64,000 bases of DNA from the NCBI GenBank assembly GCA_002269645.1, contig NIVC01002589.1, positions 1 through 64,000 on the forward strand, read 5' to 3'. Below the pieces are notes generated by a model. That model was not told where the DNA came from, made no database searches, and saw only the letters and a list, made by a program, of their open reading frames with translations. Each line of letters starts with the position of its first letter. Position 1 is the stretch's first letter. The DNA comes from Macrostomum lignano (Eukaryota). The position numbers and the translations under genes are program-made. Of the stretch, positions 1 to 31,307 are shown piece after piece.

Positions 1-10
1 GTGGGCATGA

Positions 11-6254
<6,244 letters not shown>

Positions 6255-6979
6255 TCTGAGCTGCTCGCAAGATTTAAACTATGAATATTATTACGAATAT
6301 ACTTATTATACTTACAAAAGTTTCATGTCCATATGATAATATTTTCAGCCAGGAAAACTTGCTGAACTTTAGCAGGATTTTGTGACATTAAAATATTTTC
6401 AAATCACATTCTATCACTGACGCTATAGAAACATTGGATCAGCCATTTGCAAACTTTTCTTGCAAAATGCGCTTAGTCTACTTTCGTTTTGGGCATATAA
6501 ATGCGCACGACATGCTAAATTCTCGAGAAATCGAATTTTCTCGATCGAATGTCTATGGTCAAGTCTCATTCAGCGCTATGCATTCTCTAGAGCATACTAA
6601 AATCGACTGTAGCGTCCTTCTACTTCAGTTGTCTATGGCAGTTATAATAATTTACATGTACATTAGTCATGTACATTGCTGTCGCTGAGGAAAGCAATAA
6701 AATGCAGCCAAAGACGCCCAATCGAAGTAGCTTCAGGTTTCCAATGTACATGTACCTGTGCATTGTTCTTATTCAGTTCAATTTCTGGGATATTTTCAAT
6801 CCTACCTACTTGTAGTACATACTGTATGCCGCTAAACACATGTAAAAACAAGATTACACGCACTTACATAGTCCTTCTAATAATAATTCGCTTCGCATTG
6901 ATTTGAAAAATATATCTGTTCTGCTTTGAATCTGTAAGATCAACTTGAACTGTACATTTTATTGCTGCCATTGCTCTGG

Positions 6980-8805
6980 TTCTTCAGTCAGCTGTTGGGG
7001 ATTTTTCAGTTTGAGGATTCTTCAGTCAGCTGTTGGCGATTCCTCAGTCAGCTGTTGGCGATTCTTCAGTCAGCTGTTGGGGATTCTTCAGTCAGCTGTT
7101 GGCGATTCCTCAGTCAGCTGTTGGCGATTCTTCAGTCAGCTGTTGGCGATTCCTCAGTCAGCTGTTGGCGATTCTTCTTCTTCAGTCAGCTGTTGGGGAT
7201 TCTTCAGTCAGCTGTTGGCGATTCTTCTTCTTCAGTCAGCTGTTGGGGATTCTTCAGTCAGCTGTTGGCGATTCTTCTTCTTCAGTCAGCTGTTGGGGAT
7301 TCTTCAGTCAGCTGTTGGCGATTCTTCTTCTTCAGTCAGCTGTTGGGGATTCTTCAGTCAGCTGTTGGCGATTCTTCTTCTTCAGTCAGCTGTTGGGGAT
7401 TCTTCTTCTTCAGTCAGCTGTTGGGGATTCTTCTTCTTCAGTCAGCTGTTGGGGATTCTTCAGTCAGCTGTTGGCGATTCCTCAGTCAGCTGTTGGGGAT
7501 TCTTCAGTCAGCTGTTGGGATTCTTCAGTCAGCTGTTGGGGATTCTTCAGTCAGCTGTTGGGGATTCTTCAGTCAGCTGTTGGCGATTCTTCAGTCAGCT
7601 GTTGGGGATTCTTCAGTCAGCTGTTGGGGATTCTTCAGTCAGCTGTTGGCGATTCTTCTTTAGTCAGCTGTTGGCGATTCTTCAGTCAGCTGTTGGGGAT
7701 TCTTCAGTCAGCTGTTGGCGATTCTTCAGTCAGCTGTTGGCGATTCTTCTTCTTCAGTCAGCTGTTGGGGATTCTTCAGTCAGCTGTTGGGGATTCTTCA
7801 GTCAGCTGTTGGCGATTCTTCTTCTTCAGTCAGCTGTTGGGGATTCTTCAGTCAGCTGTTGGCGATTCTTCAGTCAGCTGTTGGGGATTCTTCAGTCAGC
7901 TGTTGGGGATTCTTCAGTCAGCTGTTGGGATTCTTCAGTCAGCTGTTGGCGATTCTTCAGTCAGCTGTTGGGGATTCTTCAGTCAGCTGTTGGGGATTCT
8001 TCAGTCAGCTGTTGGGGATTCTTCAGTCAGCTGTTGGCGATTCTTCTTCTTCAGTCAGCTGTTGGGGATTCTTTAGTCAGCTGTTGGGGATTCTTCAGTC
8101 AGCTGTTGGGGATTCTTCAGTCAGCTGTTGGGGATTCTTAAGTCAGCTGTTGGGGATTCTTCAGTCAGCTGTTGGCGATTCTTCAGTCAGCTGTTGGCGA
8201 TTCTTCAGTCAGCTGTTGGAGATTCTTCAGTCAGCTGTTGGCGATTCTTCAGTCAGCTGTTGGCGATTCTTCAGTCAGCTGTTGGCGATTCTTCAGTCAG
8301 CTGTTGGCGATTCTTCAGTCAGCTGTTGGCGATTCTTCTTCTTCAGTCAGCTGTTGGCGATTCTTCAGTCAGCTGTTGGCGATTCTTCAGTCATCTGTTG
8401 GCGATTCTTCTTCTTCAGTCAGCTGTTGGCGATTCTTCAGTCATCTGTTGGCGATTCTTCTTCTTCAGTCAGCTGTTGGCGATTCTTCAGTCAGCTGTTG
8501 GCGATTCTTCAGTCAGCTGTTGGGGATTCTTCAGTCAGCTGTTGGGGATTCTTCAGTCAGCTGTTGGGGATTCTTCAGTCAGCTGTTGGGGATTCTTCAG
8601 TCAGCTGTTGGCGATTCTTCAGTCAGCTGTTGGGGATTCTTCAGTCAGCTGTTGGGGATTCTTCAGTCAGCTGTTGGCGATTCTTCAGTCAGCTGTTGGC
8701 GATTCTTCAGTCAGCTGTTGGCGATTCTTCTTCTTCAGTCAGCTGTTGGCGATTCTTCAGTCAGCTGTTGGGGATTCTTCAGTCAGATGTTGGGGATTCT
8801 TCTAC
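6980..8805. repeat. 22-bp minisatellite (GATTCTTCAGTCAGCTGTTGGS) with CTT-expansion variants
   Basis: About 80 copies, intergenic between ABCC and SUMO. Confidence 0.96.
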
Positions 8806-9394
8806 AACCTACGTGACGCGCTTGTGACAGTTTTCAACGGGACTTCCTTCAGTCAGCTGTTTAAACATTCGGGAATATTTGTTGTATTTAAAAAATGAAA
8901 CCAAAAAAGACTATAATTTTTAGACAGCAACACTGCATGAGCATGCGATATAAAAATGCGCGGGGTAACTATAGCATAACATATTATAACTCAGCCCCTA
9001 GTTGAAGTTTATATTTGAACGCCAGCCATAAATACGCATAGATTATTTATTATCAACTGACTGCCATTAAAGCATACAATTTGATGTTATAATTTTAAAC
9101 GACAAAAGCGAAAATGAATTTTGACTTAATTAAATAAAAAACAGACAGGTATTAACACAGTTATTAATTCCCTAATAAGATTGAGATTTAAACCAACCCT
9201 AAATATTATCATTTTAATAATCTACTGTATTAATCCAGATTAGAAAACCTCGAACATTACACAATGAGAAACACAACATAAACACAGATTAAGAAAAGGG
9301 AACCACATACGAGCGTACAGTAAAGTGAAGAGTAAAGCAAACAGTAAGTGCATCAGATCGGGGTAGCTGTTTGGGGAAATACCCAACTCCCCAG

Positions 9395-9795
9395 AGCAGT
9401 CAGTGGGATTAACTCCCCAAATCCCCAAAACAACCGCCCTGACACCCAATAGCAGTCAGTGGGATAAACTCCCCAAATCCCCAAAACAACCGCCCTGACA
9501 CTCCATAGCAGTCAGTGGGATTAACTCCCCAAATCCCCAAAACAACCGCCCTGACACTCCATAGCAGTCAGTGGGATAAACTCCCCAAATCCCCAAAACA
9601 ACCGCCCTGACACCCAATAGCAGTCAGTGGGATAAACTCCCCAAATCCCCAAAACAACCGCCCTGACACTCCATAGCAGTCAGTGGGATAAACTCCCCAA
9701 ATCCCCAAAACAACCGCCCTGACACCCCATAGCAGTCAGTGGGATAAACTCCCCAAATCTCCAAAACAACCGCCCTGACATCCCATAGCAGTCAC
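9395..9795. repeat. 56-bp minisatellite downstream of SUMO copy 1
   Basis: 7 units of AGCAGTCAGTGGGATAAACTCCCCAAATCCCCAAAACAACCGCCCTGACACCCAAT; reverse complement of the 17201-17988 array. Confidence 0.95.
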
Positions 9796-9822
9796 CGAGA
9801 ATGAGTCGCACAGCCCAGCTGC

Positions 9823-10089
9823 TCACACGCAGCCGCCGACCTGAGACTGGAACACCTCAATCGTGTCATTCTCCTCCATGTCCAACGTGGCCGGGGTGTC
9901 CGACTCCTCCACGTTGTTTCCGTCGAAGATGAAGCGGACGGTCTGTGCCCGAAGGCCCAGCCTATCGCAGTAAGTGGTCATCAGCTTCCTCAGCGGGGTG
10001 TTCTTCTTGATCTTGAAGTGGATCACGGCCCCGTCCTGGCCCTGCACCTTCAGGTTGATGTGCTCGCTGGAGGCGTTGGTTCCCGACAT
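9823..10089 (-). CDS. SUMO: Small ubiquitin-like modifier (SUMO), copy 1, intronless
   Basis: 88 aa with HINLKV..QDG..HFKIKK.TPLRKL...RF.FDG...DTP..LDME..DTIEVF and a C-terminal di-glycine QVGG-CV. Confidence 0.95.
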
Positions 10090-10102
10090 GCTGGCTGCTG
10101 AT

Positions 10103-10495
10103 TAGTGCTCAAGTGAGAGCTCACTGGCATGCAGAGAAGCGAGTGGGTGAGGAGTGAGCCACTCAGTGCTGAGTAGTGCTCAAGTGAGAGCTCACTGGCT
10201 GAAAGAGAAGCGAGTGGGTGAGGAGTGAGCAACTCAGTGCTGAGTAGTGCTCAAGTGAGAGCTCACTGGCTGAAAGAGAAGCGAGTGGGTGAGGAGTGAG
10301 CAACTCAGTGCTGAGTAGTGCTCAAGTGAGAGCTCACTGGCTGAAAGAGAAGCGAGTGGGTGAGGAGTGAGCCACTCAGTGCTGAGTAGTGCTCAAGTGA
10401 GAGCTGGCTGGCTGAAAGAGAAGCAAGTGGGTGAGGAGTGAGCAACTCAGTGCTAAGTAGTGCTCAAGTGAGAGCTCGCTGGTTGAAAGAGAAGC
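10103..10495. repeat. 71-bp minisatellite upstream of SUMO copy 1
   Basis: About 6 units at 71-bp spacing (10141, 10212, 10283...); reverse complement of the 16092-16893 array. Confidence 0.95.
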
Positions 10496-11892
10496 TAATA
10501 AAAGAAGGCAGTGCTTATTTAGCCAGCAGTCTAGCTTCAAAGTTAGTCAGAAGAATCTAAAACTTGACTTACTCTTTGAAAAATTAATGACAAAACAAAC
10601 ATTTTGGAAGTCTAGACATTGTTTTATTGCAATTTTGGTGTAGATATTTACACTAGTAGAAACTACTAAATCTTGCAAATTTAAATAGCTATCATAACTT
10701 TCCTTCATATTCATAAAGCTGTGCTAAAGCTCAAGGTAATTACGACAATTTGATAGATACCAGTATATTAATATTTAATGTTTCATTCTTTGCCTTTCAG
10801 ACATGCTAACTAGAGAATTAAAACCCTGTGGTCACATCAATCAAATACTTCTAAATATGATGGATGATACTTTGAATGTATGAATGCACTTCCTGCTCTT
10901 TTTATATATTGACACTAATAAATAAATAAAACAGTATGAGGCTTTTGTGTTTGTGTATGTTCTCAATAAACCTTTATTTAAAAAGAATCTTTTGTTAAGG
11001 GGTAATCAAGCATTAGCATTGAAATGAAAAAAAACAAACTTTTAAATTCCTTATTCCATTTAAAAAGAAAAATAATGGAAGTTTTATAAAAACATTTGAT
11101 TTGCTTTTTCTTACATTTAGTCCCTAAAGTTTGATATTAGGATATCTTAATATCCTAAGCCTAAACTCAAAGGAACATATAGCCCATAGTTTTCTGCATA
11201 AGAAACTAGGTACAGTCACCTTTTTGGCTCTTTAACAATTGCTTGTCTAGTATAGTCTAGTAATGTCTAGTATATATATCACAAATAAATTTGTTTGTAG
11301 GGAGTCAATTTTTGGCATATTGTGTAATGGATTTGAGTGTAGAGCCATGACCTTCTGATCCTGGAACACCCAGACCTAGACTAAGAGAAAATCTAAATAG
11401 ATGAAAGCTATAAAAGAAAGATACAAAATACAAAAGTGCCATAAGGCCACTCAGGTCAATAGTATAGACATAATATACTAAATCTTACACTACTAAGTCT
11501 ATATACTACTAGTATAAAGATTGTTTAAAAAGTCTGATCAAACATGAATATCTTTTTTGAGTCACTACTTTGTCTTGAAACTTTATACCATAGACAAATA
11601 TCATACCATTGTGATAGGAAACAGATTTAATGATACAAAATTGTTCAGTTTAGTTATATTTATTAGTTTAATTAATTTTTTTTATTATAACCATATGGCT
11701 TTTATAAACCTGTATCTCAGTAAGTTTCAACTGATTATCCCCAATCATTGCTTGCAATGACTAGATGGCTAGACATTCACCTGCACTAATCTTCATTGTG
11801 CACCCAAGGCCTATTAGGCCATTAGGCCCAAGAGCTCTATAATATGAATATTACATTTTTGTTTTTGAACAATTTTATGTTGTTAAATGGGG

Positions 11893-12525
11893 AACTGATC
11901 AAAAGGGTAATAGATCAAAGAGGCAATAGTTAAAAGGGTGATAGTCAAAAGGGCAACAGTCTAAAGGGTGATAAACTGACAATCATAACAGTTACATGTC
12001 CACATATTAGACTTGCATATATTTGTCAAAATGTACATCTTATAGTTGTATTGGCATTATATATGCATGTATAGTAATGCACCAAGGACTACTCAGGTAT
12101 CAAAGAATGGAAAACCCCATTTCTTAGAAAATTTTACAAGGCAGTTTTTCTAAAAATATATATAATGGATATAGAAATTTTTCATTTTTCAGCATAGAAA
12201 ATTGTTATTGCTTTTAGTCTAGACTTAATGAGTCAATGCTCATCTTTTGATGTGTTCTACCTTTTTTATAGGTCTATTGATATTCATAAAGCTTTTCACT
12301 AGTTAGCTAGGAATCATAAAATAGATTGCAAAGTTAACAAATATGCAGGCACAAGTCTAGGCCTAATTTTAACACGTACATTAACAAATATATTTTGAAC
12401 ACAGAAGTCTAATACATGTGAACTTATAATTGTGTATATTATGATTGTTGTCCTTTTGATTGTTGCCCTTTTGACTATCACCTTTCTGACTGTCGCCTTT
12501 TTGATCTGTTGCCTTTTTGACCTGC
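11893..12525. mobile_element. Putative foldback/MITE-like element whose inverted arms are built from ~15-bp subunits
   Basis: TCAAAAGGG..ATAG-like units at 11897-11972 are the reverse complement of units at 12448-12522; no target-site duplication (TSD) identified. Confidence 0.45.
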
Positions 12526-13049
12526 AGCTATTAAATGTATATTATACTCGTATCATAGTAAAAACATTTTGGTATTCATTTAAGTAGAAAAAGAATTAAA
12601 TATACACTTTTAGGCTCTTATATAAGGGCTATCAGAAAAGTTTTGCTTATTGACTAATATATTTTTGTAAGTTACATAACAAAATATGGCTAAGCCCAGG
12701 CCACTGCCTAGGATATAAAGTGTCTATTACAAAAAATTTGGCTTTAAATCTGGACACCAGAAGAAGCTTCATAGCAGAAAATTTGCAAGTCCTATTATGA
12801 ACACCTCCATTTTGCAAAAAAGCTTCTCTAAAGAAGACAAATGAACCATCATCAAGTTCCATGCCTTGCTTGGACTGTCTCCAATAGAGACACATGCAAT
12901 AATGCATTAAGCCATGGCAGGCTCTTGCCCATCATATGACACTGTTCCTTGCTAGATAGCAATTTTTTTTATTAGCATAGAGGACATGTAAGATGAACCT
13001 TGAAATGGAAAGCCCTGTTTGACATGAACAATGGGAATATAACATTTGC

Positions 13050-13400
13050 TTATGGGAAGTTTGCTTGCAGAATTTTGCTTGCTCAACTTTGCTTGTTGAA
13101 TTTTGTTTGCCAAACTTTGCTTGCCAAACATTGCATGCCACACTTTGCTTGCTGAACTTTGCTTGCAGGAAATTTGCTTGTAGGAATTTTGCTTGCCATG
13201 CCACTGGAATTTTGATGTCTGCTTCCTAGAAATTTGCAATCATAATTGCAGAAATAGAAGAGCTCAAAAATAGGTCCTTTAAGGTTACGCAAGAAAACTG
13301 TAGCTGGCAAACCTTGGCAAGCAAAGTTTGGCAATCAAAGTTCCTGCTGGCAAACTTTGACAAGCTTATATGCAGCAAGCAAATTTCTTGCAAGCAAACA
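13050..13400. repeat. Inverted clusters of a 14-bp unit (TTTGCTTGC core), foldback-like
   Basis: TTTGCTTGC about 9 times at 13060-13197 and GCAAGCAAA about 4 times at 13317-13398; GCCAAACTTTGCTTGCC and GGCAAGCAAAGTTTGGC are perfect reverse complements. Confidence 0.6.
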
Positions 13401-13820
13401 GACAGAAAGTCTGTAAAATAAGTCATCCGGGTCCATAAAATAGCAAATATGAAAATTATATTGGTCTGGGTCCAAGTCCAGATCTGAGTTTTTAAATTTG
13501 ATATAACCCTGCTTTATCTTCAAATAAATAAATAAATGGCTATTTAAAATACTATTAAATTTTCAATAGGCCCTACCTAAAAAACGCAGTCTTAGATTAG
13601 GCCTAAAATGCAATAGGGACTAGATAAAAACATTTTTTTGCCATTTTTGCTATAACCAATGCCTTTCATATTTAGACTAGGGGGGCCTAGTCTCGACTCT
13701 CTAGACTTTAGGCAGTGTAACCCTATCTAAGTGTGATTCTTGTTTAAACCTAATTTAAAAAACCTAACCTTAAAGTTTAAATATTGTGGGAAAATTTAAA
13801 ACCATCAGCAGCATAACATA

Positions 13821-14080
13821 GGGCCTTTTCATATTGCTTGTTCTGGTTCCAGAACCAGAACCAATTTGTGAAGTATAACTTTTTGTCTCCATAACTAGAG
13901 GGAGATACGTGCTATAAAGTTTTTATTATTGAATGACAATCGCCAAGAAGAAAGTGAAAAATTGTGCTAAGTTAGGTTGTTAAGGCAGTCAAATATTAAC
14001 AGAGTTTAATAGTTATACTGCTGTTTTTCTTGGAATTCCGAACCGATTCTGGTTCTGGAATTGGTAATATGAAAAGGCCC
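13821..14080. mobile_element. 260-bp MITE (PIF/Harbinger-Tourist-like) with 15-bp perfect TIRs
   Basis: GGGCCTTTTCATATT at 13821 and AATATGAAAAGGCCC ending at 14080; subterminal CCAGAACCAGAA also inverted; flanked by ATA on both sides. Confidence 0.7.
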
Positions 14081-16091
14081 ATAAAAGCGAAACAATACGC
14101 AACTACGCGTACGTTCGTTTTAAATTTTTCTTGAAAATATTCATTTTTCGACGGAATTTTTAGTATGTATACGAATCATGAATTTAAATAAAAATAACTA
14201 AAAAGTATTACATTAACTACTGTTACTGAAATGACAAGCTCATAAAGTCTTTCATTTTTATTAAAGGTGTAATGTGTCCTTCAATATTTCTTTTGTGTAT
14301 TAAATTTGCTTTCTTTGAAAATATGCTGTATTTTCATTGCGCTGATTTGTTGCAATTGTTGGTTTGCTGTTCATAATTGCTTCCTACCCCAGTCAATATA
14401 ATAAAGGACACTAAATTATATTTGCAAAACTAGAGCTACACAACCTACAGTGTTGCTGCTGTTGGTTTGGGCCAATAGACTATTTGGCCAGCAGCCAATA
14501 GACTTACCACGGCCCACAACTCAATAGGCCTAAGCAATCCATACAAATCAATTATGGCGATCCTTCGGTTTACGATCACCTTATATTTTACTCGTTGTAA
14601 GACAAAAATCGACAGTAGTTTCAAATGATCGAAAAGGTTTTCAAATGTCAAATGTTTTCAAACATTGATTCGCTAGTAGCTTATTTATCACTTTCGCTTT
14701 ACAAACACCCAAACTTACGTTTCTCATTAAATGATTGTAAACCGAAGTTGGCTGTAAAAAAAAGCATGTCAAATAGTCACAAAAAACTGCTTATTCCAGA
14801 TCAAGGGCATCAAAATATAAAATTTTGAGACCATTGTACTGTGGCTTCTGATTCCACGTTATACATTGCCTGTAAACTCCTAAATGGAAGCATAATGGAA
14901 ATGGAAGCTGTTACCCTTACTCAAATTAATTTTTTGTGCCACACCTCCCTCTCACTTTTAGTTTACAATCACTTCTACTCATATGCTCCATTTAAATGAT
15001 CACAAACCAAAGCTGGCATCTATTATGACTATAGTATAAGAAAACCTAGTAAAGTGTTTATTGTCATTTGACAATGTTAAACTAAATAGAAACTGCAATT
15101 TTAAAAGAAAATAATTAAAAGTATAAAAAAAATTATTTCTAAAATTAATAATAATAAAAGTAAAAGTAAAATTTTCTTATAAAAGTATATAAGAAAGTTG
15201 CTAGGCCTATGCAATACTATTTCCTTTTGTTCTATATTTGATAAGTTTCATAGGTTAGTACATTTTTTTCTTTATAAGTGGCTAAAGATTTCTATTGGTT
15301 TCTTATAGGTTTGATATTTAAAAATTATATAATCATGGCTTTCTTTCTATGAATATTATTCTATTTTAAATATTTTTTTGTACTTAATATCCAGTTAGTT
15401 ATCACAACAACAAAAAAAATTATTGTTATTAGCTAAAAAATACATTTATAACTATCAGAAAGCTAGGTCTGCATATTATAGCATGTATAAATTATAAAAT
15501 TAAAAACATTAAATCATTATTCTTATACATAAACATTTTTTTAATATATTAGCTATTATTGCCTTTGGTTAAAAATCATATTTTTTGGCATCATAAATTG
15601 ATAATATGAATATTTTAAGTGCTACTCTAGTTTTTAATAAATTATCTAATAGTCAAGTTAATAAGACTATACCATATATGCACAACCCCCCTGATTTACA
15701 CTGGCCATGCAACTTATGCAACTTACCTGTAAAAGAAACCTAATGCAATTTTGGGTAAACAGCAGGAGTAACTATGAATGTCTTAAAAGGGCTAAATGCC
15801 TCATCATCTATTTAGTACTACGTCTACAGTATTCTTTAGGCTGGGCATTTTTGCAACTTACCCCTGGTCTACCACAATTTACGGTGGCCAGATTGGCCAG
15901 GTCGGCCAGCAGTTGCGCATGTATGGACTATACTAGCATTGATTTTATTTAATTTTAATGGTAAAGCAAGTTTATAAAACAAATTCAAGAAAATGATTTG
16001 TTTAATTTTTTGCAGATAATAATAATATAAATCAGATATAATAATGCCTATCTTTTGAGAAAAAAACCATTTTTCATTTGTTTTTAGCTAG

Positions 16092-16893
16092 TCAGCTCTT
16101 ACTTAAATACTACTCAGCACTGAGTTGCTCACTCCTCACCCACTTGCTTCTCTTTCAGCCAGTGAGCTCTCACTTAAGCACTACTCAGCACTGAGTTGCT
16201 CACTCCTCACCCACTCGCTTCTCTTTCAGCCAGTGAGCTCTCACTTAAGCACTACTCAGCACTGAGTTGCTCACTCCTCACCCACTCGCTTCTCTTTCAG
16301 CCAGTGAGCTCTCACTTGAGCACTACTCAGCACTGATTTGCTCACTCCTCACCCACTCGCTTCTCTTTCAGCCAGTGAGCTCTCACTTGAGCACTACTCA
16401 GCACTGAGTTGCTCACTCCTCACCCACTCGCTTCTCTTTCAGCCAGTGAGCTCTCACTTGAGCACTACTCAGCACTGAGTTGCTCACTCCTCACCCACTC
16501 GCTTCTCTTTCAGCCAGCAAGCTCTCACTTGAGCACTACTCAGCACTGAGTTGCTCACTCCTCACCCACTCGCTTCTCTTTCAGCCAGTGAGCTCTCACT
16601 TAAGCACTACTCAGCACTGAGTTGCTCACTCCTCACCCACTCGCTTCTCTTTCAGCCAGTGAGCTCTCACTTGAGCACTACTCAGCACTGAGTTGCTCAC
16701 TCCTCACCCACTCGCTTCTCTTTCAGCCAGTGAGCTCTCACTTGAGCACTACTCAGCACTGAGTTGCTCACTCCTCACCCACTCGCTTCTCTTTCAGCCA
16801 GTGAGCTCTCACTTGAGCACTACTCAGCACTGAGTTGCTCACTCCTCACCCACTCGCTTCTCTTCATGCCAGTGAGCTCTCACTTGAGCACTA
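16092..16893. repeat. 71-bp minisatellite upstream of SUMO copy 2
   Basis: About 12 units (markers at 16165, 16236 ... 16875). Confidence 0.95.
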
Positions 16894-16906
16894 ATCAGCA
16901 GCCAGC

Positions 16907-17173
16907 ATGTCGGGAACCAACGCCTCCAGCGAGCACATCAACCTGAAGGTGCAGGGCCAGGACGGGGCCGTGATCCACTTCAAGATCAAGAAGAACACCC
17001 CGCTGAGGAAGCTGATGACCACTTACTGCGATAGGCTGGGCCTTCGGGCACAGACCGTCCGCTTCATCTTCGACGGAAACAACGTGGAGGAGTCGGACAC
17101 CCCGGCCACGTTGGACATGGAGGAGAATGACACGATTGAAGTGTTCCAGTCTCAGGTCGGCGGCTGCGTGTGA
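16907..17173 (+). CDS. SUMO: SUMO, copy 2, intronless; protein identical to copy 1
   Basis: Same 88 aa; only one synonymous difference seen (Glu GAA vs GAG in DTIEVF). Confidence 0.95.
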
Positions 17174-17200
17174 GCAGCTGGGCTGTGCGACTCATTCTCG

Positions 17201-17988
17201 GTGACTGCTATGGGATGTCAGGGCGGTTGTTTTGGGGATTTGGGGAGTTTTTCCCACTGACTGCTATGGGGTGCCAGGGCGGTTGTTTTGGGGATTTGGG
17301 GAGTTTATCCCGCTGACTGCTATTGGGTGCCAGGGCGGTTGTTTTGGGGATTTGGGGAGTTTATCCCACTGACTGCTATGGGGTGTCAGGGCGGTTGTTT
17401 TGGGGATTTGGGGAGTTTTTCCCACTGACTGCTATTGGGTGTCAGGGCGGTTGTTTTGGGGATTTGGGGAGTTTATCCCACTGACTGCTATGGGGTGTCA
17501 GGGCGGTTGTTTTGGGGATTTGGGGAGTTTTTCCCACTGACTGCTATTGGGTGTCAGGGCGGTTGTTTTGGGGATTTGGGGAGTTTATCCCACTGACTGC
17601 TATTGGGTGTCAGGGCGGTTGTTTTGGGGATTTGGGGAGTTTATCCCACTGACTGCTATTGGGTGTCAGGGCGGTTGTTTTGGGGATTTGGGGAGTTTAT
17701 CCCACTGACTGCTATGGGGTGTCAGGGCGGTTGTTTTGGGGATTTGGGGAGTTTATCCCACTGACTGCTATGGGGTGCCAGGGCGGTTGTTTTGGGGATT
17801 TTAGGAGTTTATCCCGCTGACTGCTATTGGGTGCCAGGGCGGTTGTTTTGGGGATTTGGGGAGTTTATCCCACTGACTGCTATTGGGTGTCAGGGCGGTT
17901 GTTTTGGGGATTTGGGGAGTTTATCCCACTGACTGCTATTGGGTGTCAGGGCGGTTTTTTAGGGGGGTTGGAGAGGTTATCCCACTGA
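17201..17988. repeat. 56-bp G-rich minisatellite downstream of SUMO copy 2
   Basis: 14 units (GGGCGGTT markers at 17221 ... 17949, 56-bp period). Confidence 0.95.
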
Positions 17989-18865
17989 TTTATGTGAATT
18001 GCTGTTACCATGTTTATGTATTTTAGCGTTAGTACAACTCATTTTTAGGATATTGGATTTTCGCAGTTAACCACAGGCTTCTATGGGATTTTGTCTGTCT
18101 GAGAAACCTTGCTTGGATTGCCTGGTGTCCGATGCCCGATTCGAATGACCCACTGTAATAATTTTCTAACTTACCTGTTTAAATAATAACTCACGTCATG
18201 CAATGTGCGTTCTCAGCTAGTATTGTTAATAATATACACGAGTAATAAAACCGGCGAATTACATAATACCAGCTGTGCAGTGTTCGAATAATAATGTATC
18301 TATTTTTAGCACTTGCTCGCCCCTGTCTGTCGCAGTCTCCGTCTGTCTTGTAATTCTTTATTTTATCCGTTCGCTTTTTACATATATAATCTATCGTTTT
18401 TATGCACTTCTAAATTATTCGTAATTGTGAATAGTTATTCAGGCTTTTGAATTCGTGGGAACTTGTATCGCGTGTTACTACTGTTGTGGAGTAGCTGCTT
18501 TGGAAATATTCATACTAATTCAATACAAGAAGAAAAAATGATGTAATAATCCTAAAATATAAAGTCTCGGCTCGGTCATTCTTATTTGTACTTTTTTAAC
18601 ATCGACTTTGTGCAAAGAAATTCCTCTCTGCAATAAGCGTGTTTTAAGTTGTCAGTGACTTGGTGTACCCAAAATCTGTAGAAGAATCTCGGCCAATTTA
18701 AGTAGCAGGTTGCAATCGATTTCTAAGAAATGGGCAGTGATTCATTTGGATTTAGTATGCTCTCATCAAGAAAGCATATACATCGCTTAGTGTGGTTTAG
18801 CCATAGACAAATTCGGTCGACCGGATACTCGTATATCGACTGCATGGCCACTGCATTACCTAAGG

Positions 18866-19862
18866 ATCTGGGAGGCTGCTGATTTGGGATAGCTGTGGAC
18901 ATATCCTGGGGATTTGGGATAGCTGTGGACACACCCTGATGATCTGGGATAGCTGTGGACACATCCTGAGGATCTGGGATAGCTGTGGACACACCCTAAG
19001 GATCTGGGATAGCTGTGGACACACCCTGAGGATCTGGGATAGCTGTGGACACACCCTGAGGATCTGGGATAGCTGTGGACACACCCTGAGGATCTGGGAT
19101 AGCTGTGGACACACCCTGAGGATCTGGAATAGCTGTGGACACATTCTGGGGATTTGGGATAGCTGTGGAAACATCCTGGGGATTCGGGATAGCTGTGGAA
19201 ACATCCTGGGGATTTGGGATAGCTGTGGAAACATCCTGGGGATTTGGGATAGCTGTGGAAACATCCTGGGGATTTGGGATAGCTGTGGAAACATCCTGGG
19301 GATTCGGGATAGCTGTGGAAACATCCTGGGGATTTGGGATAGCTGTGGAAACATCCTGGGGATTTGGGATAGCTGTGGAAACAACCTGGGGATTTGGGAT
19401 AGCTGTGGAAACATCCTGGGGATTTGGGATAGCTGTGGAAACATCCTGGGGATTTGGGATAGCTGTGGAAACAACCTGGGGATTTGGGATAGCTGTGGAC
19501 ACATCCTGGGGATTTGGGATAGCTGTGGAAACATTCTGGGGATTTGGGATAGCTGTGGACACATCCTGGGGATTTGGGATAGCTGTGGAAACAACCTGGG
19601 GATTTGGGATAGCTGTGGACACATCCTGGGGATTTGGGATAGCTGTGGACACATCCTGGGGATTTGGGATAGCTGTGGAAACAACCTGGGGATTTGGGAT
19701 AGCTGTGGACACATCCTGGGGATTTGGGATAGCTGTGGAAACAACCTGGGGATTTGGGATAGCTGTGGACACATCCTGGGGATTTGGGATAGCTGTGGAC
19801 ACATCCTGGGGATTTGGGATAGGTGTGGACACACCCTGAGGAGCTGGGATAGCTGCAGACAC
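18866..19862. repeat. 30-bp minisatellite (GGGATAGCTGTGGACACATCCTGGGGATTT)
   Basis: About 33 copies downstream of DTD1. Confidence 0.95.
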
Positions 19863-20053
19863 AACTATAAGAATTGGGACTCAGTCGTGAAGCACGACAC
19901 AAACAGAAAATTAAATAAAAATGAATAAGAAAAGCAAATTTAGATCTGCTTTACACTCACAATATTAGCTACCCATGTTACACTTTTGAGAATTGGCAAA
20001 TAGCAGCAGAATTACTAAAATATATTTCTACACTATTTAGCAATAGTCCAGCA

Positions 20054-21400
20054 TCAAGTTGCTGCCTCATCGGTTTGCTGAGCAGTCTTCGGCTCCCGAG
20101 TGTCCAAACTGATGGTCACCGGGCCACAGTTGGTGCTGCTGACTTCTATCATGGCGCCAAACACTCCGGCTTTGATTTTGTCCTCCTGGTAGTCTCGGCG
20201 CATCGATTCCAGGATGTCGGCGTACATCTTCTCGGCCTGGTCGGTGGCCATGGCGCGGCGGAAGTCCGGCTTGTTGCCCTGCCATGTTTTTTGAGAAAGA
20301 AATTGGGTTGGGCAACTGAGGATCTGGGAGGTTGGGCAACTGAGGATCTGGGAGGCTGGGCCAGACCTGAGGATCTGGGATTCTGGCCTAGCAACTGAGA
20401 ATCTGAGGCTGGCTCCCAGCAACTGAGGATCTGGGATTCTGGCCTAGCAACTGAGAATCTGAGGCTGGCTCCCAGCAACTGAGGATCTGGGATTCTGGCC
20501 TAGCAACTGAGAATCTGAGGCTGGCTCCCAGCAACTGAGGATCTGGGATTCTGGCCTAGCAACTGAGAATCTGAGGCTGGCACAGCAACTGAGGATCTGG
20601 GAGGCTGGCACAGCAACTGAGGATCTGGGAGGCTGGCACAGCAACTGAGGATCTGGGAGGCTGGCACAGCAACTGAGGATCTGGGATTCTGGCCTAGCAA
20701 CTGAGGATCTGGGAGGCTGGCATAGCAACTGAGGATCTGGGATTCTGGCCTAGCAACTGAGAATCTGAGGCTGGCTCCCAGCAACTGAGGATCTGGGATT
20801 CTGGCCTAGCAACTGAGAATCTGAGGCTGGCTCCCAGCAACTGAGGATCTGGGATTCTGGCCTAGCAACTGAGAATCTGAGGCTGGCACAGCAACTGAGG
20901 ATCTGGGAGGCTGGCACAGCAACTGAGGATCTGGGAGGCTGGCACAGCAACTGAGGATCTGGGATTCTGGCCTAGCAACTGAGGATCTGGGAGGCTGGCA
21001 TAGCAACTGAGGATCTGGGATTCTGGCCTAGCAACTGAGGATCTGGGAGGCTGGCTCAGAAACTGAGGATCTGGGAGGCTGGCCTAGCAACTGAGAATCT
21101 GGAGAATGGCGGTGGCCCAGCCTGAGTCACCTTGAGCGTCGCATGCAGCGTGAACTGGCTGACGACCAGCACCTCCAAGCCGAGATCCCGGACACTCTTC
21201 ATCCATCGTTTCCCACCCTGTTCGTCATTTTCGTCGAACAGCCGCAGGTTGAGCAACTTCTTGCTCATCCAGTCGGCGTCCTGAGCGGTGTCGGACTGGC
21301 AGATGCCCAGCAGGACGCAGATGCCCCGGCCAATTTCGCCTACGGTGGCCCCATCAACCACAACAGCAGCTCGGCTGACTCGCTGCACGATGGCTCGCAT
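20054..21400 (-). CDS. DTD1: D-aminoacyl-tRNA deacylase 1; exons 21131-21400 and 20054-20278 (164 aa)
   Basis: MRAIVQRV start, SQFTL motif, GNKPDF after splicing and the GPVT (Gly-cisPro) motif. The GT-AG phase-0 intron 20279-21130 joins TLK|GNK. Confidence 0.95.
20305..21118. repeat. Composite 27-29-bp minisatellite (ACTGAGGATCTGGG... family) filling the DTD1 intron
   Basis: Alternating GGAGGCTGGCACAGC / GATTCTGGCCTAGC / AATCTGAGGCTGGCTCCCAGC units with block duplications. Confidence 0.93.
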
Positions 21401-21494
21401 GCGCTACTGTAAGTAGGACATATCGATAGGACATTTTTAATTAATGTTGCATTAATGTTGCACGAATTCAAATTTCACCCGTGCTATCAAATAA

Positions 21495-22225
21495 AGAATC
21501 TGAGGGGGAACCGGCGCCAACTGAAGAATCTGAAGGGAAACCGGCGCCAACTGAAGAATCTGAAGGGGAACCGGCGCCAACTGGAGAATCTGAAGGGGGA
21601 ACCGGCGCTAACTGAAGAATCTGAAGGGGAGCCGGCGCCAACTGAAGAATCTGAAGGGAGACCTGCGCCAACTGAAGAATCTGAAGGGAAACCGGCGCCA
21701 ACTGAAGAATCTGAAGGGGAGCCGGCGCCAACTGAAGAATCTAAAGGGGAGCCGGCGCCAACTGAAGAATCTGAAGGGAAACCTGCGCCAACTGGAGAAT
21801 CTGAAGGGGGAACCGGCGCTAACTGAAGAATCTGAAGGGGAGCCGGCGCCAACTGAAGAATCTGAAGGGAAACCGGCGCCAACTGAAGAATCTAAAGGGG
21901 AGCCGGCGCCAACTGAAGAATCTGAAGGGAAACCTGCGTCAACTGAAGAATCTGAAGGGGAGCCGGCGCCAACTGAAGAATCTGAAGGGAAACCGGCGCC
22001 AACTGAAGAATCTGAAGGGAAACCGGCGCCAACTGAAGAATCTAAAGGGGAGCCGGCGCCAACTGAAGAATCTGAAGGGAAACCTGCGCCAACTGAAGAA
22101 TCTGAAGGGGAGCCGGCGCCAACTGAAGAATCTGAAGGGAAACCGGCGCCAACTGAAGAATCTGAAGGGGAGCCGGCGCCAACTGAAGAATCTGAAGGGG
22201 AGCCGGCGCCAACTGAAGAATCTGA
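21495..22225. repeat. 30-bp minisatellite (AACTGAAGAATCTGAAGGGGAGCCGGCGCC)
   Basis: About 24 copies, including occasional 31-bp units. Confidence 0.94.
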
Positions 22226-22529
22226 CTATGCAGAAATTCTCAATTCCATGGTTAACTATCAAGAAATAAAACAAGATAAGTATTAGAAAGTTACAAAATC
22301 CACAGCTAGACAAAATATTGTTTTGCATTTTTTATTTGAATCACGCAAGAAAGACGGATGAAAAAGCAAATCCAACAAGTCAAGGCACTAAATTGATAGC
22401 GGGAAAGTAAAAAATCTAACATTTCAATTTGTTTGCAGCGCAATACGGAAAACATCATTTCATTGGACCGATTGGCCTGTGATTTAAACGGCACTGCACG
22501 AAAAGTTGATTCAAGCAATACTGAAGATC

Positions 22530-23318
22530 AGAAGATCTGGGAGACTGGCGGTGGCCCAGCAAATGAGCATCTGGGAGGCTGGCCCAACAACTGAGCATCT
22601 GGGAGGCTGGCCCAACAACTGAGCATCTGGGAGGCTGGCCCAACAACTGAGGATCTGGGAGGCTGGCCCAACAACTGAGCATCTGGGAGGCTGGCCCAAC
22701 AACTGAGCATCTGGGAGGCTGGCCCAGCAACTGAGCATCTGGGAGGCTGGCCCAACAACTGAGCATCTGGGGGGCTGGCCCAACAACTGAGCATCTGGGA
22801 GGCTGGCCCAACAACTGAGCATCTGGGAGGCTGGCCCAACAACTGAGCATCTGGGAGGCTGATGGCCCAGCAACTGAGCATCTGGGAGGCTGGCCCAACA
22901 ACTGAGCATCTGGGGGCTGGCCCAACAACTGAGCATCTGGGAGGCTGGCCCAACAACTGAGGATCTGGGAGGCTGGCCCAACAACTGAGGATCTGGGAGG
23001 CTGGCCCAACAACTGAGGATCTGGGAGGCTGGCCCAACAACTGAGCATCTGGGGGCTGGCCCAACAACTGAGCATCTGGGAGGCTGGCCCAACAACTGAG
23101 CATCTGGGAGGCTGGCCCAACAACTGAGGATCTGGGAGGCTGGCCCAACAACTGAGGATCTGGGAGGCTGGCCCAACAACTGAGGATCTGGGAGGCTGGC
23201 GGTGGCACAAAAACTGAGGATCTGAGATTTTGGTCTAGCAACAGAGGATCTGAGAGGATGTTCTAGCAACAGAGGATCTGAGAGGATGTTCTAGCAACTG
23301 AGGATCTGGAAGGTTGGC
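22530..23318. repeat. 28-bp minisatellite (ACTGAGSATCTGGGAGGCTGGCCCAACA)
   Basis: About 27 copies; same family as the DTD1 intron and 30505 arrays. Confidence 0.94.
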
Positions 23319-23513
23319 AGTCACAGTCTGAAGATAGTCGGAGTTAGTGCGCAGGACAGTTGAAAACCAAAGTAGTTGTTAGTGAGTTCTACGTACTTCA
23401 TCTACTTTTACTTAAATTTAAAAAATGTTATTACCGCTGTATTTCAAAAGAGACTATGTACTTTTGAAAGGAGAGTATTGTAGATTTAAAAATAAATAAA
23501 AGTGTAAATATTT

Positions 23514-26500
23514 TCAAATCATCGCTTTAGTCAGGTTTTCAGTTGGTTCCGGCAGCTTCTGCAGGTGACTGATTACGTCATTGACCTGAAATGAAAATTT
23601 ATGAAGGTGCTCATATTAAATCACATTAGATTAAACTAAATTACAGCATACGTAATTAATAATTTGACAAGGACAAGTACATATATGAATGAAATTCAGA
23701 GCATCCGGATCTTATGTTCTAAACTTAAATCTAGTCTGTGGCGCTAAAATCTAACATGTGGCGCTAAAATCTAGCATGTGGCGCTAAAATCTAGTCTGTG
23801 GCGCTAAAATTTAGCATGTGGCGCTAAAATCTAGTCTGTGGCGCTAAAATCTAGCATGTGGCGCTAAAATCTAGTCTGTGGCGCTAAAATCTAATTTGTG
23901 GCGCTAAAATCTAGCATGTGGCGCTAAAATCTAGTCTGTGGCGCTAAAATTTAGCATGTGGCGCTAAAATCTAGCATGTGGCGCTAAAACCTAGCATTTG
24001 GCGCTAAAATCTAGTCTGTGGCGCTAAAATCTAGCATGTGGCTATAAAATCTATTCTGTGGCGCTTAAATCTAACATGTGGCGCTAAAATCTAGCATGTG
24101 GCGCTAAAATCTAGCATGTGGCGCTAAAATCTAGCATGTGGCGCTAAAATCTAGCATGTGGCGCTAAAATCTAGCATGTGGCGCTAAAATCTAGTCTGTG
24201 GCGCTAAAATTTAGCATGTGGCGCTAAAATCTAGCATGTGGCGCTAAAATCTAGCATGTGGCGCTAAAATCTAGCATTTGGCGCTAAAACCAAGCATTTG
24301 GTGCTAAAATCTAGTCTGTGGCGCTAAAATCTAATCTGTGGCGCTAAAATCTAACATGTGGCGCTAAAATCTAACATGTGGCGCTAAAATCTAACATGTG
24401 GCGCTAAAATCTAGTCTGTGGCGCTAAAATCTAGCATGTGGCTATAAAATCTAGTCTGTGGCGCTAATGTCTAACATGTGGCGCTAAAATCTAGTCTGTG
24501 GCGCTAAAATCTAGCATGTGGCTATAAAATCTAGTCTCTGGCGCTAAAATCTAGCCTTACATTGACTATGGGTGATGCGGCTCATGCCATAATTTAAAAC
24601 TCACAGTTTTAAAAGTTTTACCACCAGCCGTATACCTATGACTGCGGACCCGACTGGCTGGGGACAGCACGTGCAAATGCAAATGATTCACTGAATTAAA
24701 CGGAGGCCAGTGGAAACCGCATCTGTGAAGAGGGGAGGCGGGTTAAAGAATAAATTATAGTTCTCGGTATGAACTTACGGACACAAACCACGGTGACTTG
24801 GAGCCGTATTTGAGCTCGGCTAAGCAGCCCATGCTACTGACTGGGCTAATGAGGTGCAGGTGCAGGTGGCTCACGGAAGTGAATGGCGGCCAATGGAACC
24901 CAATCCTACAAGTGAATTGGAGCTCCATTGAAGATGCTTGCCTCCGGTAGCTGCTACCACCCATTCTTCAGGGTGAGTTGTCGATGCCCCTGATTCCTCA
25001 GTCAGTTGCTCTCCCCCTGATTCCTCAGCCAGTTGCTTTCCCCCTGATTCTTCAGGCAGCTGCTCTCCCCACCCCTGATTCTTCAGGCAGCTGCTCCCCT
25101 CCCCCTGATTCTTCAGGCAGCTGCTCTCCCCACCCCTGATTCTTCAGGCAGATGCTCTCCCCACCCCTGATTCTTCAGGCAGATGCTCTCCTCACCCCTG
25201 ATTCTTCAGGCAGCTGCTCTCCCTCCCCCTGATTCTTCAGGCAGATGCTCTCCCCACCCCTGATTCTTCAGGCAGATGCTCTCCCCACCCCTGATTCTTC
25301 AGGCAGCTGCTCTCCCCTCCCCCTGATTCTTCAGGCAGCTGCTCTCCCCACCCCTGATTCTTCAGGCAGCTGCTCTCCCCTCCCCCTGATTCTTCAGGCA
25401 GCTGCTCTCCCCACCCCTGATTCTTCAGGCAGCTGCTCTCCCCACCCCCTGATTCTTCAGGCAGCTGTTCTCCCCTCCCCCTGATTCTTCAGGCAGCTGC
25501 TCTCCCCTCCCCCTGATTCTTCAGGCAGCTGCTCTCCCCTCCCCCTGATTCTTCAGGCAGATGCTCTCCCCTCCCCCTGATTCTTCAGGCAGATGCTCTC
25601 CTCACCCACTGATTCTTCAGGCAGCTGCTCTCCCCTCCCCCTGGTTCTTCAGGCAGTTGCTCTCCTCACCCACTGATTCTTCAGGCAGCTGCTCTCTCCT
25701 CCCCTGGTTCTTCAGGCAGTTGCTCTCCTCACCCACTGATTCTTCAGGCAGCTGCTCTCCCCTCCCCTGGTTCTTCAGGCAGTTGCTCTCCTCACCCACT
25801 GATTCTTCAGGCAGCTGCTCTCCCCTCCCCCTGATTCTTCAGGCAGCTGCTCTCCCCTCCCCCTGATTCTTCAGGCAGATGCTCTCCCCTCCCCCTGATT
25901 CTTCAGGCAGATGCTCTCCTCACCCACTGATTCTTCAGGCAGCTGCTCTCCTCACCCACTGATTCTTCAGGCAGCTGCTCTCCCCTCCCCCTGGTTCTTC
26001 AGGCAGCTGCTCTCTCCTCCCCTGGTTCTTCAGGCAGCTGCTCTCCCCACCCCTGATTCTTCAGGCAGCTGCTCTCCTCACCCACTGATTCTTCAGGCAG
26101 CTGCTCTCTCCTCCCCCTGATTCTTCAGGCAGCTGCTCTCTCCTCCCCTGGTTCTTCAGGCAGTTGCTCTTCTCACCCACTGATTCTTCAGGCAGCTGCT
26201 CTCCCCACCCCTGATTCTTCAGGCAGTTGCTCTCCCCTCCCCCTGATTCTTCAGGCAGATGCTCTCCTCACCCACTGATTCTTCAGGCAGATGCTCTCCC
26301 CTCCCCCTGATTCTTCAGGCAGCTGCTCTCCCCTCCCCCTGATTCTTCAGGCAGCTGCTCTCCCCTCCCCCTGATTCTTCAGGCAGCTGCTCTCCCCTCC
26401 CCCTGATTCTTCAGGCAGATGCTCTCCTCACCCACTGATTCTTCAGGCAGCTGCTCTCCCCTCCCCCTGGTACTTCAGGCAGTTGCTCTCCTCACCCACT

Positions 26501-27765
26501 TATTCTTCAGGCAGCTGCTCTCTCCTCCCCTGGTTCTTCAGGCAGCTGCTCTCCCCACCCCTGATTCTTCAGGCAGCTGCTCTCCTCACCCACTGATTCT
26601 TCAGGCAGCTGCTCTCTCCTCCCCTGATTCTTCAGGCAGCTGCTCTCTCCTCCCCTGGTTCTTCAGGCAGTTGCTCTTCTCACCCACTGATTCTTCAGGC
26701 AGCTGCTCTCCCCTCCCCTGATTCTTCAGGCAGCTGCTCTCCCCTCCCCCTGATTCTTCAGGCAGCTGCTCTCCCCTCCCCCTGATTCTTCAGGCAGCTA
26801 ATCTCTCTCTACTCATAAACTTTACTGGATGATTTATCATAATGTTAGTGGTTGAATGGTTGATTGACAACTAAGGTTAAAGTATTTATGCAGCTGACAC
26901 TTGCCTGGCATCTTGTACATTAGCACCAAGCCTAGACAATGCCTCCAAACCAGAGGTTTCCAATAGTTTCACAAGCTCAATATCATTCTTTGTCAGTTGC
27001 TTGCAGTCTTTGATATGGATGACTGGACAAGACAATAGGTGGTAAGTTGCAGCTGGACAAATATCGTGGAAGACTATCACTTGATCTGTCTGGAAAGTAA
27101 GAAATATTTTTAAATCATTTTATTTCATAATAATTTATGTGGCATAAAAATATTTAAAAGATAAATATTGAAATTTATAACCTTTTTAGCTTTTATAAAC
27201 AAAATATACTATGTTTTTTATAATTTTCAATAGTAATAGCTTTTTTAAAAACAAAATTGGAATAATTTGGTATTTTTAGGTCATCTAGGTCATCTTAGGT
27301 TTAAAAAAGCTATATTTGCTTTGTTTTAAATGTTTTTGCTTAGGATTGGATAGATAAAAATCTTTTTTATCCTTGATCTCTAACCTTTCGCCTTCAGTGG
27401 GTTGTTCTCCCTTTCTCATTTTTTAGTTTTTTCTAGTTTGAAAAACTATGCCAGTCTAGTGACCAGGCTGGGATATTATAAGCATTTATATATCTATAAT
27501 CTAGACTAGACCATATATTAATTAAGATAAATAAATAAATAAAACTAAAGCTATGATATAATATAGGTCTAAGACTAAAATAAGCAAATAATGGATAGGC
27601 TTAAAGTTTTAATATATACTCAGACAGCAATATAGGACTCAGACAGCCAAGCAAAATAATCATATAACTTACTTGAAGAACAATGTCAGATTGCTGTCTT
27701 TTATGATCAACTATATCACAAAAGGTACAGTTCCTGCGCTTTTGATGCTCTTTAGGCTTGGGCAT
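23514..27765 (-). CDS. HINT3: Histidine triad nucleotide-binding protein 3 (HINT3-like), 158 aa; exons 27673-27765, 26905-27089, 24779-24905, 23514-23585
   Basis: Spliced protein MPKPKEHQKRRNCTFCDIV...VIVFHDICPAATYHLLSCPVIHIKDCKQL...DARIGFHWPPFTSVSHLHLHLISP...PWFVSVNDVISHLQKL..., with CxxC, DI.PAA..H and the GFH.PPF.S.SHLHLH HIT motif typical of HINT3. All junctions are in phase; the second intron is GC-AG. Confidence 0.92.
23733..24556. repeat. 20-bp minisatellite (GTGGCGCTAAAATCTAGCAT) in HINT3 intron 23586-24778
   Basis: About 41 copies. Confidence 0.95.
24988..26800. repeat. 31-32-bp minisatellite (CTGATTCTTCAGGCAGCTGCTCTCCCCWCCC) in HINT3 intron 24906-26904
   Basis: About 57 copies. 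Confidence 0.95.
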
Positions 27766-28332
27766 TCACAATTATCTCTGTTAATAGGCGTTCGTATAAA
27801 AAGTTGCTAATTTTGGTTAAGGTTGCAGCTTGCTAAATAATAAACTGATTCCCTTATATAACTGCTGCGCCGCTATATGCCTATATACTTACTGTTGCGT
27901 ACGGCTAAATATATGACTGTAATTTTGCAAAATATGACGTAAGACGAAAAATTTTAGTTTACATTGCAATTGTCTCCCATCCACTAATTTTTAAACCATC
28001 AATCTTTATTTCTACAATAATGGGCTCAATATTTTGACTTTTCAAAGCTGGAGAGAACTATGTGTATTTTTTGTATTATCAACATCTAAATGTTTGTTAA
28101 AGTTAAATACATAAATTCAGAAAGTTCCCGTAGCCAAGCATATAATCGATCGATTCAAGTAGCTCATCGTATATTTTATTCAATATTTAACGGCACACCA
28201 GACACCAAAGTCAAAAAAGTAAGCTCAAAAAAAAAAATTGATACTTGCATACATCTCTAGAACATGCAGTTATACATCCGATTATGTGCAATTATGAAAT
28301 TTTCATTCAAACAAGAATTCTAAGACTAAAAG

Positions 28333-30159: not shown

Positions 30160-30504
30160 TGCAGTATAGTATAGAATTCTTAATTATGTCTCCCTCTTTC
30201 AAGAATGTTCGGCACAAGCTGTATATAATTAACCTGCCGTCAGCATTGAACAGGAAGTTCAAGCTGGAGCCAATTTCTGATATGCTGACCTTGTCCTAGT
30301 TTTGTGCCCCTACATTATAAAACCTACTGCATGCGAAGATAGTATTAATTCTCTTGCAGTCCTGCCTCTAAAGCCCCTAAACAATATCTACATGTAAAAG
30401 CTGCCCGCAAACTGCCATATGGTTGCTGTATACTGACTAAAATAGTTACTTATTATTATACACTTACACGAAAGGTCAATTCAGGCAATACTGAAGCTCA
30501 TACA

Positions 30505-30802
30505 AAAAATCTGGGAGGCTGGCCCATGCAGCAACTGAGGATCTGGGAGGCTGGCCCATGCAGCAACTGAGGATCTGGGAGGCTGGCCCATGCAGCAACT
30601 GAGGATCTGGGAGGCTGGCCCAGCAACTGAGGATCTGGGAGGCTGGCCCATGCAGCAACTGAGGATCTGGGAGGCTGGCCCAGCAACTGAGGATCTCTGA
30701 GGCTGGCCTAGCAACTGACACTCTGGGAGGCTGGCACAGCAACTGAGGATCTGAGAGGCTGGCCCAGAAACTGAGGATCTGGGTGGCTGGCCCAGGAACT
30801 GA
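30505..30802. repeat. 28-31-bp minisatellite of the ACTGAGGATCTGGGAGGCTGGCCC family
   Basis: About 10 copies. Confidence 0.92.
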
Positions 30803-31307
30803 GATTATTTTCTCTGTGTATTTTCCTTGTATTTCTATTCTCAGTAGAGTATCAAATAAAAGTTCAGTATAATTTATACCACTTATTGTTGTTGATTGTA
30901 CACTGTATTTTAATTTATCTATTTGTTAGTTTTAGTACACTGTATTCTGTTGCGGTTCAGCCAAGTAAATATAAATATAATGGAGATGTCTATAGCTCAC
31001 AGCTCACTTAATGTCTTCTCAAGTACAACGGCAACTGCAATACACAACAGTGGTCACGATTATAATCTCATTATGCTCTTAAACCTTATCAACAACTTAA
31101 ACTTCCTTTTACGAAATGCTAGAGTTAATTATCTGCAATGTCCCCCTACACTATTGATAGTAGACGCAAGAGAGAAAGTAAACTTGCATTTGTTCGTAAA
31201 TGCAGAATATGAACAACCCAAGAGAGATAGGAAGTGCTCGGTCTTTGAGAACTAAATTGACAATCTCTCTGAGCTTTTGAATCGCAAATGAAGCAAGAAA
31301 ATGTAAA

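Follow-up and report, generated by a model that had tools for sequence, protein, structure and literature searches.

A head-to-head pair of SUMO genes between minisatellites in Macrostomum lignano, probably kept alike by gene conversion

We studied a stretch of 64,000 nucleotides (hereafter the window; positions 1 to 64,000 of contig NIVC01002589.1, assembly GCA_002269645.1) in which a small SUMO gene occurs twice in opposite orientation, each copy lying between a 71-bp and a 56-bp minisatellite. The structure is probably an ordinary conserved inverted gene duplicate under concerted evolution: we put at about 0.62 the probability that it is a DNA-level, head-to-head SUMO duplication whose arms are kept alike by purifying selection together with non-crossover conversion. 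The contig belongs to NIVC00000000, the Mlig_3_7 assembly of the flatworm M. lignano, more than half of which is repetitive, with simple and tandem repeats making up 15% of the genome; its substantial redundancy is put down to additional large chromosomes in the line that was sequenced (PMC5730564).

Structure and conservation of the inverted pair

The window contains two identical open reading frames of 88 residues on opposite strands (Table 1). Each gave a full-length family match to Pfam PF11976 (Rad60-SLD; E=3e-22, 78.5 bits against a cut-off of 23.8; residues 11-79) and also matched Pfam ubiquitin, and all copies end in ...QSQVGG-CV*, that is, a di-glycine followed by a removable tail of two residues. 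The proteins closest to the product bear the source name Macrostomum lignano, and its closest relatives, at 72-77% identity, come from Schistosoma, Trichobilharzia and Heterobilharzia, the named ones being annotated as SUMO or SUMO2. By domain, Gly-Gly tail and relatives alike, the predicted product is of the SUMO2/3 type; for that family it is otherwise unremarkable, but its N-terminus, as read from the sequence, has no obvious psi-K-x-E chain-forming site. The reading frame can be aligned over its full length with the protein encoded by a congener's mRNA, indicating that the coding sequence (CDS) is without an intron; none of the RNA-derived contigs in the index carried the exact 88-residue protein, and the transcripts found came only from the congener. 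The guanine-plus-cytosine (GC) content at third codon positions (GC3) of the CDS is 89%, as compared to 26-35% GC in the spacer between the two copies. The exact product is encoded at three places in GCA_002269645.1, twice on NIVC01002589.1 at the window coordinates and once on NIVC01001551.1. The four CDSs compared differ from one another by one or two synonymous sites only, and the two in the window by a single synonymous base, at codon 78 (GAG/GAA; positions 9856 and 17140), as an earlier reading of the DNA alone (the sequence-only reading) had stated.

That reading had also described an inverted module composed of a 71-bp array, an intronless SUMO CDS and a 56-bp array. We recovered both arrays and the CDS in each of two inverted cassettes, at 9386-10495 (-; arm A) and 16082-17988 (+; arm B), using Tandem Repeats Finder (TRF) to call the arrays. 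The cassette arms are 1.1-1.9 kb long, and the longest inverted-repeat pair joins 9386-10495 with 16501-17610 (1110 nt, 97% complementarity). In local alignments of the flanks, arm A and arm B cease to be similar at the outer edges of the arrays, at either end of the cassette. The sequence-only reading had placed the limit just there. Similarity does not run on beyond the arrays, whereas the alignment of arm A with its syntenic copy on another contig continues through the flanks. The non-coding arrays are 94-97% alike between the arms, and the directly adjoining flanks have no similarity at all. Probes of 35 nt taken from each unit matched only the two arms within the 64-kb window (15 and 20 matches; none expected from shuffled sequence). 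The 71-bp unit is not an inverted copy of the 56-bp unit, and the two arrays of one arm are unrelated. These observations support a duplicated unit that is exactly array, CDS, array, and to this extent the earlier proposal that the arrays are the breakpoints holds. As hallmarks of a cassette, the arrays do not serve: tandem arrays occupy 57% of the window (43% of its first 46 kb) and form most of each intron checked in the ABCC gene (593-5369), so that a gene bounded by minisatellites is the local norm and not a cassette signature. In the first ABCC intron only a few bases separate the GT donor from the array, another array (20312-21102) makes up most of an intron between two exon reading frames of the D-Tyr-tRNA deacylase (DTD) gene, and a sister contig holds the same arrays at the same places in very different copy numbers (e.g., 55 vs. 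13 copies of a 23-bp unit).

We compared the window with two further contigs, NIVC01001551.1 and NIVC01001565.1. The first, 3-8% diverged, shares the layout of the window, with ABCC forward, SUMO reverse, SUMO forward, and then DTD and HIT both reverse; it aligns with window positions 1-13397 (ABCC gene, arm A and proximal spacer) at 93-97% identity, and its second SUMO gene, in opposite orientation about 22 kb from the first, adjoins the DTD gene in a region that aligns with window positions 15026-30932 at 91-99%. The second contig contains the forward SUMO and reverse DTD side along with both spacer flanks; its arm A lies just beyond the retrieved locus. In all, five cassettes were examined. 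An inverted pair around a unique spacer is thus present in independent contigs: it is real, and conserved across diverged contigs.

The outer parts of the spacer (10496-13397 and 15026-16081) have syntenic counterparts in the sister contigs, at 90-93% identity, and the centre (13398-15025) is specific to the window. This centre measures 1.6 kb in the window, 7.3 kb in NIVC01001565.1 and 16.7 kb in NIVC01001551.1, and in the sister contigs it holds repeats, namely a 23-bp satellite in 115 copies (NIVC01001551.1, L001 381-2985) and a self-similar stretch (NIVC01001565.1). Arm-to-arm symmetry was absent from the whole spacer (10496-16081), in agreement with the earlier statement that it lacks matching palindromic sequence; it contains only three small, local inverted repeats that resemble foldback elements or miniature inverted-repeat transposable elements (MITEs), at 11899-12520, 13098-13398 and 13821-14080. 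The first is a foldback-like element with 69-nt inverted ends built of 15-bp tandem subrepeats and 484 nt between them, and has a conserved counterpart in the sister contig, at L001 7213-7903. The break in spacer synteny coincides with an inverted 14-bp array (13056-13398), and the MITE-like element at 13821-14080, with inverted ends of 34 nt, lies in the window-specific segment.

Probable exchange between the arms

Structure, conservation, boundaries and the pattern of similarity were observed directly; from here on we infer the conversion itself. Our alignment took in the CDS and linker together with three 5' and two 3' units (621 positions). Arms A and B of the window differ from each other at 7 of 621 positions, whereas arm A differs from its orthologue on NIVC01001551.1 at 11 of 621, and arm B from its orthologue at 17 of 618 with a further 6 gap columns. 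Four informative columns followed a concerted pattern and one followed orthology. A change of TTTCAG to T(T/G)CATG in the last 71-bp unit is found in both window arms only, and a CATCC unit variant in both arms of NIVC01001551.1 only; the order of unit variants CTGATT, consensus, consensus, CAGCAAGC is common to arm A of NIVC01001551.1 and arm B of the window. At the outer end of each array the units are degenerate; they are specific to the arm and conserved between orthologues, as seen for the outermost 56-bp unit of arm A, which is degenerate in the window and in the orthologous arm on NIVC01001551.1. Taken in this way, the alignments make it likely, although they do not prove, that non-crossover conversion exchanges the interior of the cassette in tracts that fade within the arrays; the reserve is due to the small numbers and to those variants that follow orthology. 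The arm-to-arm homogenisation proposed in the sequence-only reading hence stands as plausible, given the distances and the contig-specific variants shared between arms, with the qualification that the events are few. The flanks align in the same orientation at 91-97%, indicating that the spacer is not inverted; no spacer inversion was seen among the three contigs, and crossing-over between the arms is therefore not evident.

The history that we propose would run as follows. The inverted duplication would be older than the split between the redundant contigs, whether these are homeologous or haplotypic, and each arm would consist of the gene body with two non-coding minisatellites of its own. 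The near-identity of the arms would result from purifying selection on the CDS and from non-crossover conversion, and the conversion tracts would fade inside the arrays, leaving the outermost units and everything beyond them arm-specific. Slippage or unequal exchange would meanwhile leave array length free to vary (the arrays examined have from 3 to 14 copies).

Several points weigh against this history. Three of the four concerted columns belong to one mutational event, the positional homology of interior array units is uncertain, and an orthologous pattern is seen in the first 3' unit, in the GGCTCAC unit variant and at one site. The placement of the arrays in an outron and a 3' intron, described below, is drawn from annotation, and the acceptor of that putative 3' intron is deleted in the sister contig. 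A duplication just before contig divergence, combined with faster decay of arm B on NIVC01001551.1, could give similar numbers. We therefore considered a simple duplicate with no conversion at all, in which the duplication slightly predates the contig split and the CDS is held by purifying selection. The few differences in every comparison, the variants that follow orthology and the one or two synonymous sites that separate all four CDSs would fit such a duplicate. It predicts, however, that paralogous arms should be at least as diverged as orthologues, when in fact the window arms are the closest pair of the three compared, and it accounts poorly for contig-specific variants common to both arms of each contig and for non-coding arrays that are so alike next to flanks without similarity. 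We consider it unlikely, and retain duplication with conversion.

Inverted gene pairs homogenised by conversion are already known, and the M. lignano pair is unusual only in that the homologous arm is mostly minisatellite, including a multiplied trans-splice acceptor. Hsp70Aa and Hsp70Ab at 87A of Drosophila melanogaster are likewise near-identical, small, intronless genes of the stress or housekeeping kind, placed head-to-head around a unique spacer, with homology limited to the gene and its proximal flanks; there the paralogues are more alike than the orthologues, which is attributed to gene conversion. The SUMO homology blocks differ in being bounded by, and largely made of, minisatellites, the spacer (5.6-22 kb) is structurally variable, and the evidence for conversion is only suggestive. 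In the ampliconic palindromes of primate Y chromosomes, inverted arms of tens of kb to Mb around a unique spacer are homogenised by non-crossover conversion. The SUMO pair has the same layout and conversion is proposed for it too, but its arms of 1.1-1.9 kb carry a single gene, and its spacer is longer than the arms.

These copies are the only M. lignano SUMO genes returned by the protein search. SUMO knock-out, RNA interference or reporter work in this regeneration model will therefore have to hit both inverted copies of a locus, and to do so in each of the redundant homeologues. The locus also shows on a small scale how a gene structure rich in minisatellites hampers the assembly and annotation of this genome, and how inverted duplicates may be kept identical; it reveals no new kind of mobile element or regulatory system.

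Putative splicing signals in the arrays and other explanations

The 71-bp unit stays in register up to 6 nt before the ATG, which makes the array a tandem multiplication of the sequence directly upstream of the start codon. Every unit contains TTTCAG, then CCA and GTGAG, and the first and last of these fit motifs published for M. lignano, namely [T/C]TNCAG for the trans-splice acceptor and GT[G/A]AG for the cis donor (PMC8629364). Two GenBank CDSs from arm B of the sister contigs (PAA66541 and PAA66358) are annotated as 5'-partial, opening 36 and 33 nt ahead of the ATG with the last TTTCAG immediately before them, which is consistent with transcript models cut at a trans-splice site. Two RNA-derived contigs from the congener, with a SUMO protein that is 97% identical, carry 22-25 nt of the M. 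lignano spliced leader at their start; the 63-nt 5' untranslated region (UTR) of this mRNA is repeat-free, and so is 1 kb of its 3' UTR. The 71-bp array would accordingly be a multiplied segment that comprises the spliced-leader acceptor (TTTCAG) plus ~33 nt from the start of the 5' UTR; it probably lies for the most part in the outron, upstream of and absent from the mature mRNA. In the window the last TTTCAG is mutated in both arms (TTCATG and TGCATG), which means that another acceptor must serve there, the candidates being an AATCAG 8 nt from the ATG and the TTTCAG of the previous unit. Splice motifs were rejected as a general property of arrays: the consensus units of the ABCC intron arrays, judged by eye, lack both, making the acceptor-plus-donor content of the 71-bp unit specific to its location.

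The 56-bp array would sit either in the 3' UTR or in a 3' intron. Splicing 17169|18049 exactly reproduces an older UniRef model, A0A1I8IUK5 (...GGCVILDFRS*), in which the entire array is intron, with a GTGAG donor overlapping the stop codon; in arm A an equivalent acceptor is missing, and we treat the intron as a gene model only. A searching of the window found no tRNA genes and no spliced-leader RNA genes, and an Rfam scan of 8500-19000 at E<=0.1 gave a single sub-threshold, meaningless match inside the CDS.

A more ambitious and rather doubtful idea is that minisatellites of M. lignano arise and persist preferentially in transcribed sequence that is spliced out (outrons and introns), the 71-bp array being the multiplied acceptor and the 56-bp array the 3' intron, and that such arrays offer long, register-free homology that acts as "handles", both promoting and delimiting conversion between duplicated genes. 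If true, this would amount to a genome-specific mechanism linking splicing signals, the genesis of arrays and concerted evolution.

It is improbable that the arrays are instead selected functional modules (a multiplied acceptor, a promoter or enhancer made of hairpins or transcription-factor sites, G-rich 3' regulators of the mRNA) kept alike by selection rather than conversion. Such a role would suit the acceptor and donor motifs and the pair of hairpin-forming palindromes present in every 71-bp unit (DNA fold z = -2.8), the four G-runs read on the sense strand of the 56-bp unit, and the occurrence of both arrays in 5/5 cassettes examined. It sits badly with copy numbers that vary from 3 to 14 and from 5.6 to 11.5, with the repeat-free UTRs of the congener mRNA, and with the 3' array of arm B on NIVC01001551.1, which has decayed. 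As an explanation, hairpin structure was unconvincing, since the 71-bp unit folds moderately and the fold of the 56-bp unit is ordinary (z = -1.2).

A shared bidirectional promoter, also put forward in the sequence-only reading, is unlikely. The arrays are 5.6 kb apart and the two ATGs 6.8 kb apart in the window (about 12 and 22 kb in the sister contigs), the proximal upstream flanks of the two copies are unrelated, and the non-conserved spacer centre is replaced from contig to contig; a bidirectional pair would be expected to have divergent starts within ~1 kb and to share one conserved promoter. Each SUMO copy is probably driven from its own proximal region or from the array itself, and the promoters of the two copies would then be independent.

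The same reading had suggested a mobilised cassette, which might be a transposon, a foldback-type element or a processed retrocopy carrying SUMO between minisatellite ends. Sharp homology ends at the array edges and an intronless CDS could be read in this way, as could the tandem arrays themselves, since the inverted terminal regions of Foldback (FB) transposable elements are built of tandem subrepeats. All five annotated SUMO genes, however, lie in one syntenic locus between ABCC and DTD on three contigs (by search of the protein index, rather than of DNA genome-wide); the SUMO protein cluster consists of these five, the older UniRef model and the congener sequence. We found no target-site duplication (TSD), terminal inverted repeat or poly(A) remnant at the boundaries of either cassette or of the whole structure, no A-run at either 3' boundary, and, in the protein index, no unlinked copy. 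Boundary words of at least 7 nt were not shared at the whole structure or at cassette A, and cassette B had one 7-mer displaced by 35 nt. A processed retrogene was rejected because a mature mRNA would not contain the 400-800 bp that the duplicate has on the upstream side of the likely trans-splice acceptor, and because the duplicate has no poly(A) remnant. The resemblance to FB elements is superficial: the two arrays of a SUMO arm are unrelated, there is no TSD, the arms hold a conserved host gene, and nothing has dispersed from its one syntenic locus. With a single locus in the protein index, no insertion traces and upstream sequence included, mobility is unsupported, and we regard it as very improbable.

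Least credible of all is an assembly artefact, either a fold-back chimeric read, which the sequence-only reading had itself named as a danger, or two loci wrongly joined at the 14-bp array near 13.4 kb: synteny does break at 13398-15025, at that inverted array, in an assembly known to be redundant and repeat-rich, but the 3-8% diverged NIVC01001551.1 has both arms in the same order and orientation, collinear on both sides of the variable centre, which excludes the fold-back, and a missed-adapter palindrome would not yield a unique spacer of 5.6 kb.

Coordinates and further features of the window

Table 1. Features of the inverted SUMO pair (window coordinates).
Feature	Position	Strand	Remarks
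56-bp minisatellite, arm A, 3' of SUMO-A	9386..9794 (TRF 9389-9794)	-	7.2 copies
SUMO-A CDS, 88 codons, uninterrupted, SUMO2/3-like, C-terminus ...QSQVGG-CV	9823..10089	-	
71-bp minisatellite, arm A	10096..10495	-	5.6 copies; reaches 6 nt from ATG
AT-rich unique spacer	10496..16081	.	26-35% GC
71-bp minisatellite, arm B	16082..16900	+	11.5 copies
SUMO-B CDS, 88 codons	16907..17173	+	1 synonymous difference vs. SUMO-A, at 17140
56-bp minisatellite, arm B	17202..17988	+	14.1 copies
Putative 3' intron, model only	17170..18048	+	GTGAG donor overlapping stop codon; acceptor TTTTTAG

Seven arrays with periods of 22, 28, 30 and 32 bp (6980-8802, 18881-19863, 20312-21102, 21494-22225, 22552-23308, 25011-26799 and 30509-30803) share a core of ~10 nt, CTGA[A/G]GA(A/T)TC, all but two of whose 174 occurrences in the window fall inside them; they are related minisatellites, a family dispersed over introns and flanking sequence of the genes ABCC, DTD and HIT. 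Farther along, a satellite of ~238 bp with a 68/71-bp substructure occupies 46068-55013 in about 30 copies, and a 7.3-kb (ACAG)n microsatellite runs from 56737 to the window end at 64000, a second one of 1 kb lying at 44015-44992.

Two more uninterrupted reading frames were noted on the reverse strand: one of 608 residues at 28333-30159, with a C-terminal domain of the Methyltransf_22/FkbM type, and a very GC-rich one (66%) of 493 residues at 36188-37669 that encodes a RhoGAP-domain protein. At the DTD start (21389-21400), the GenBank product (P0103, 160 residues) is 5'-partial and begins with VQRV, four codons past the genomic ATG (MRAIVQRV...), indicating that the transcript model was cut within the first codons.

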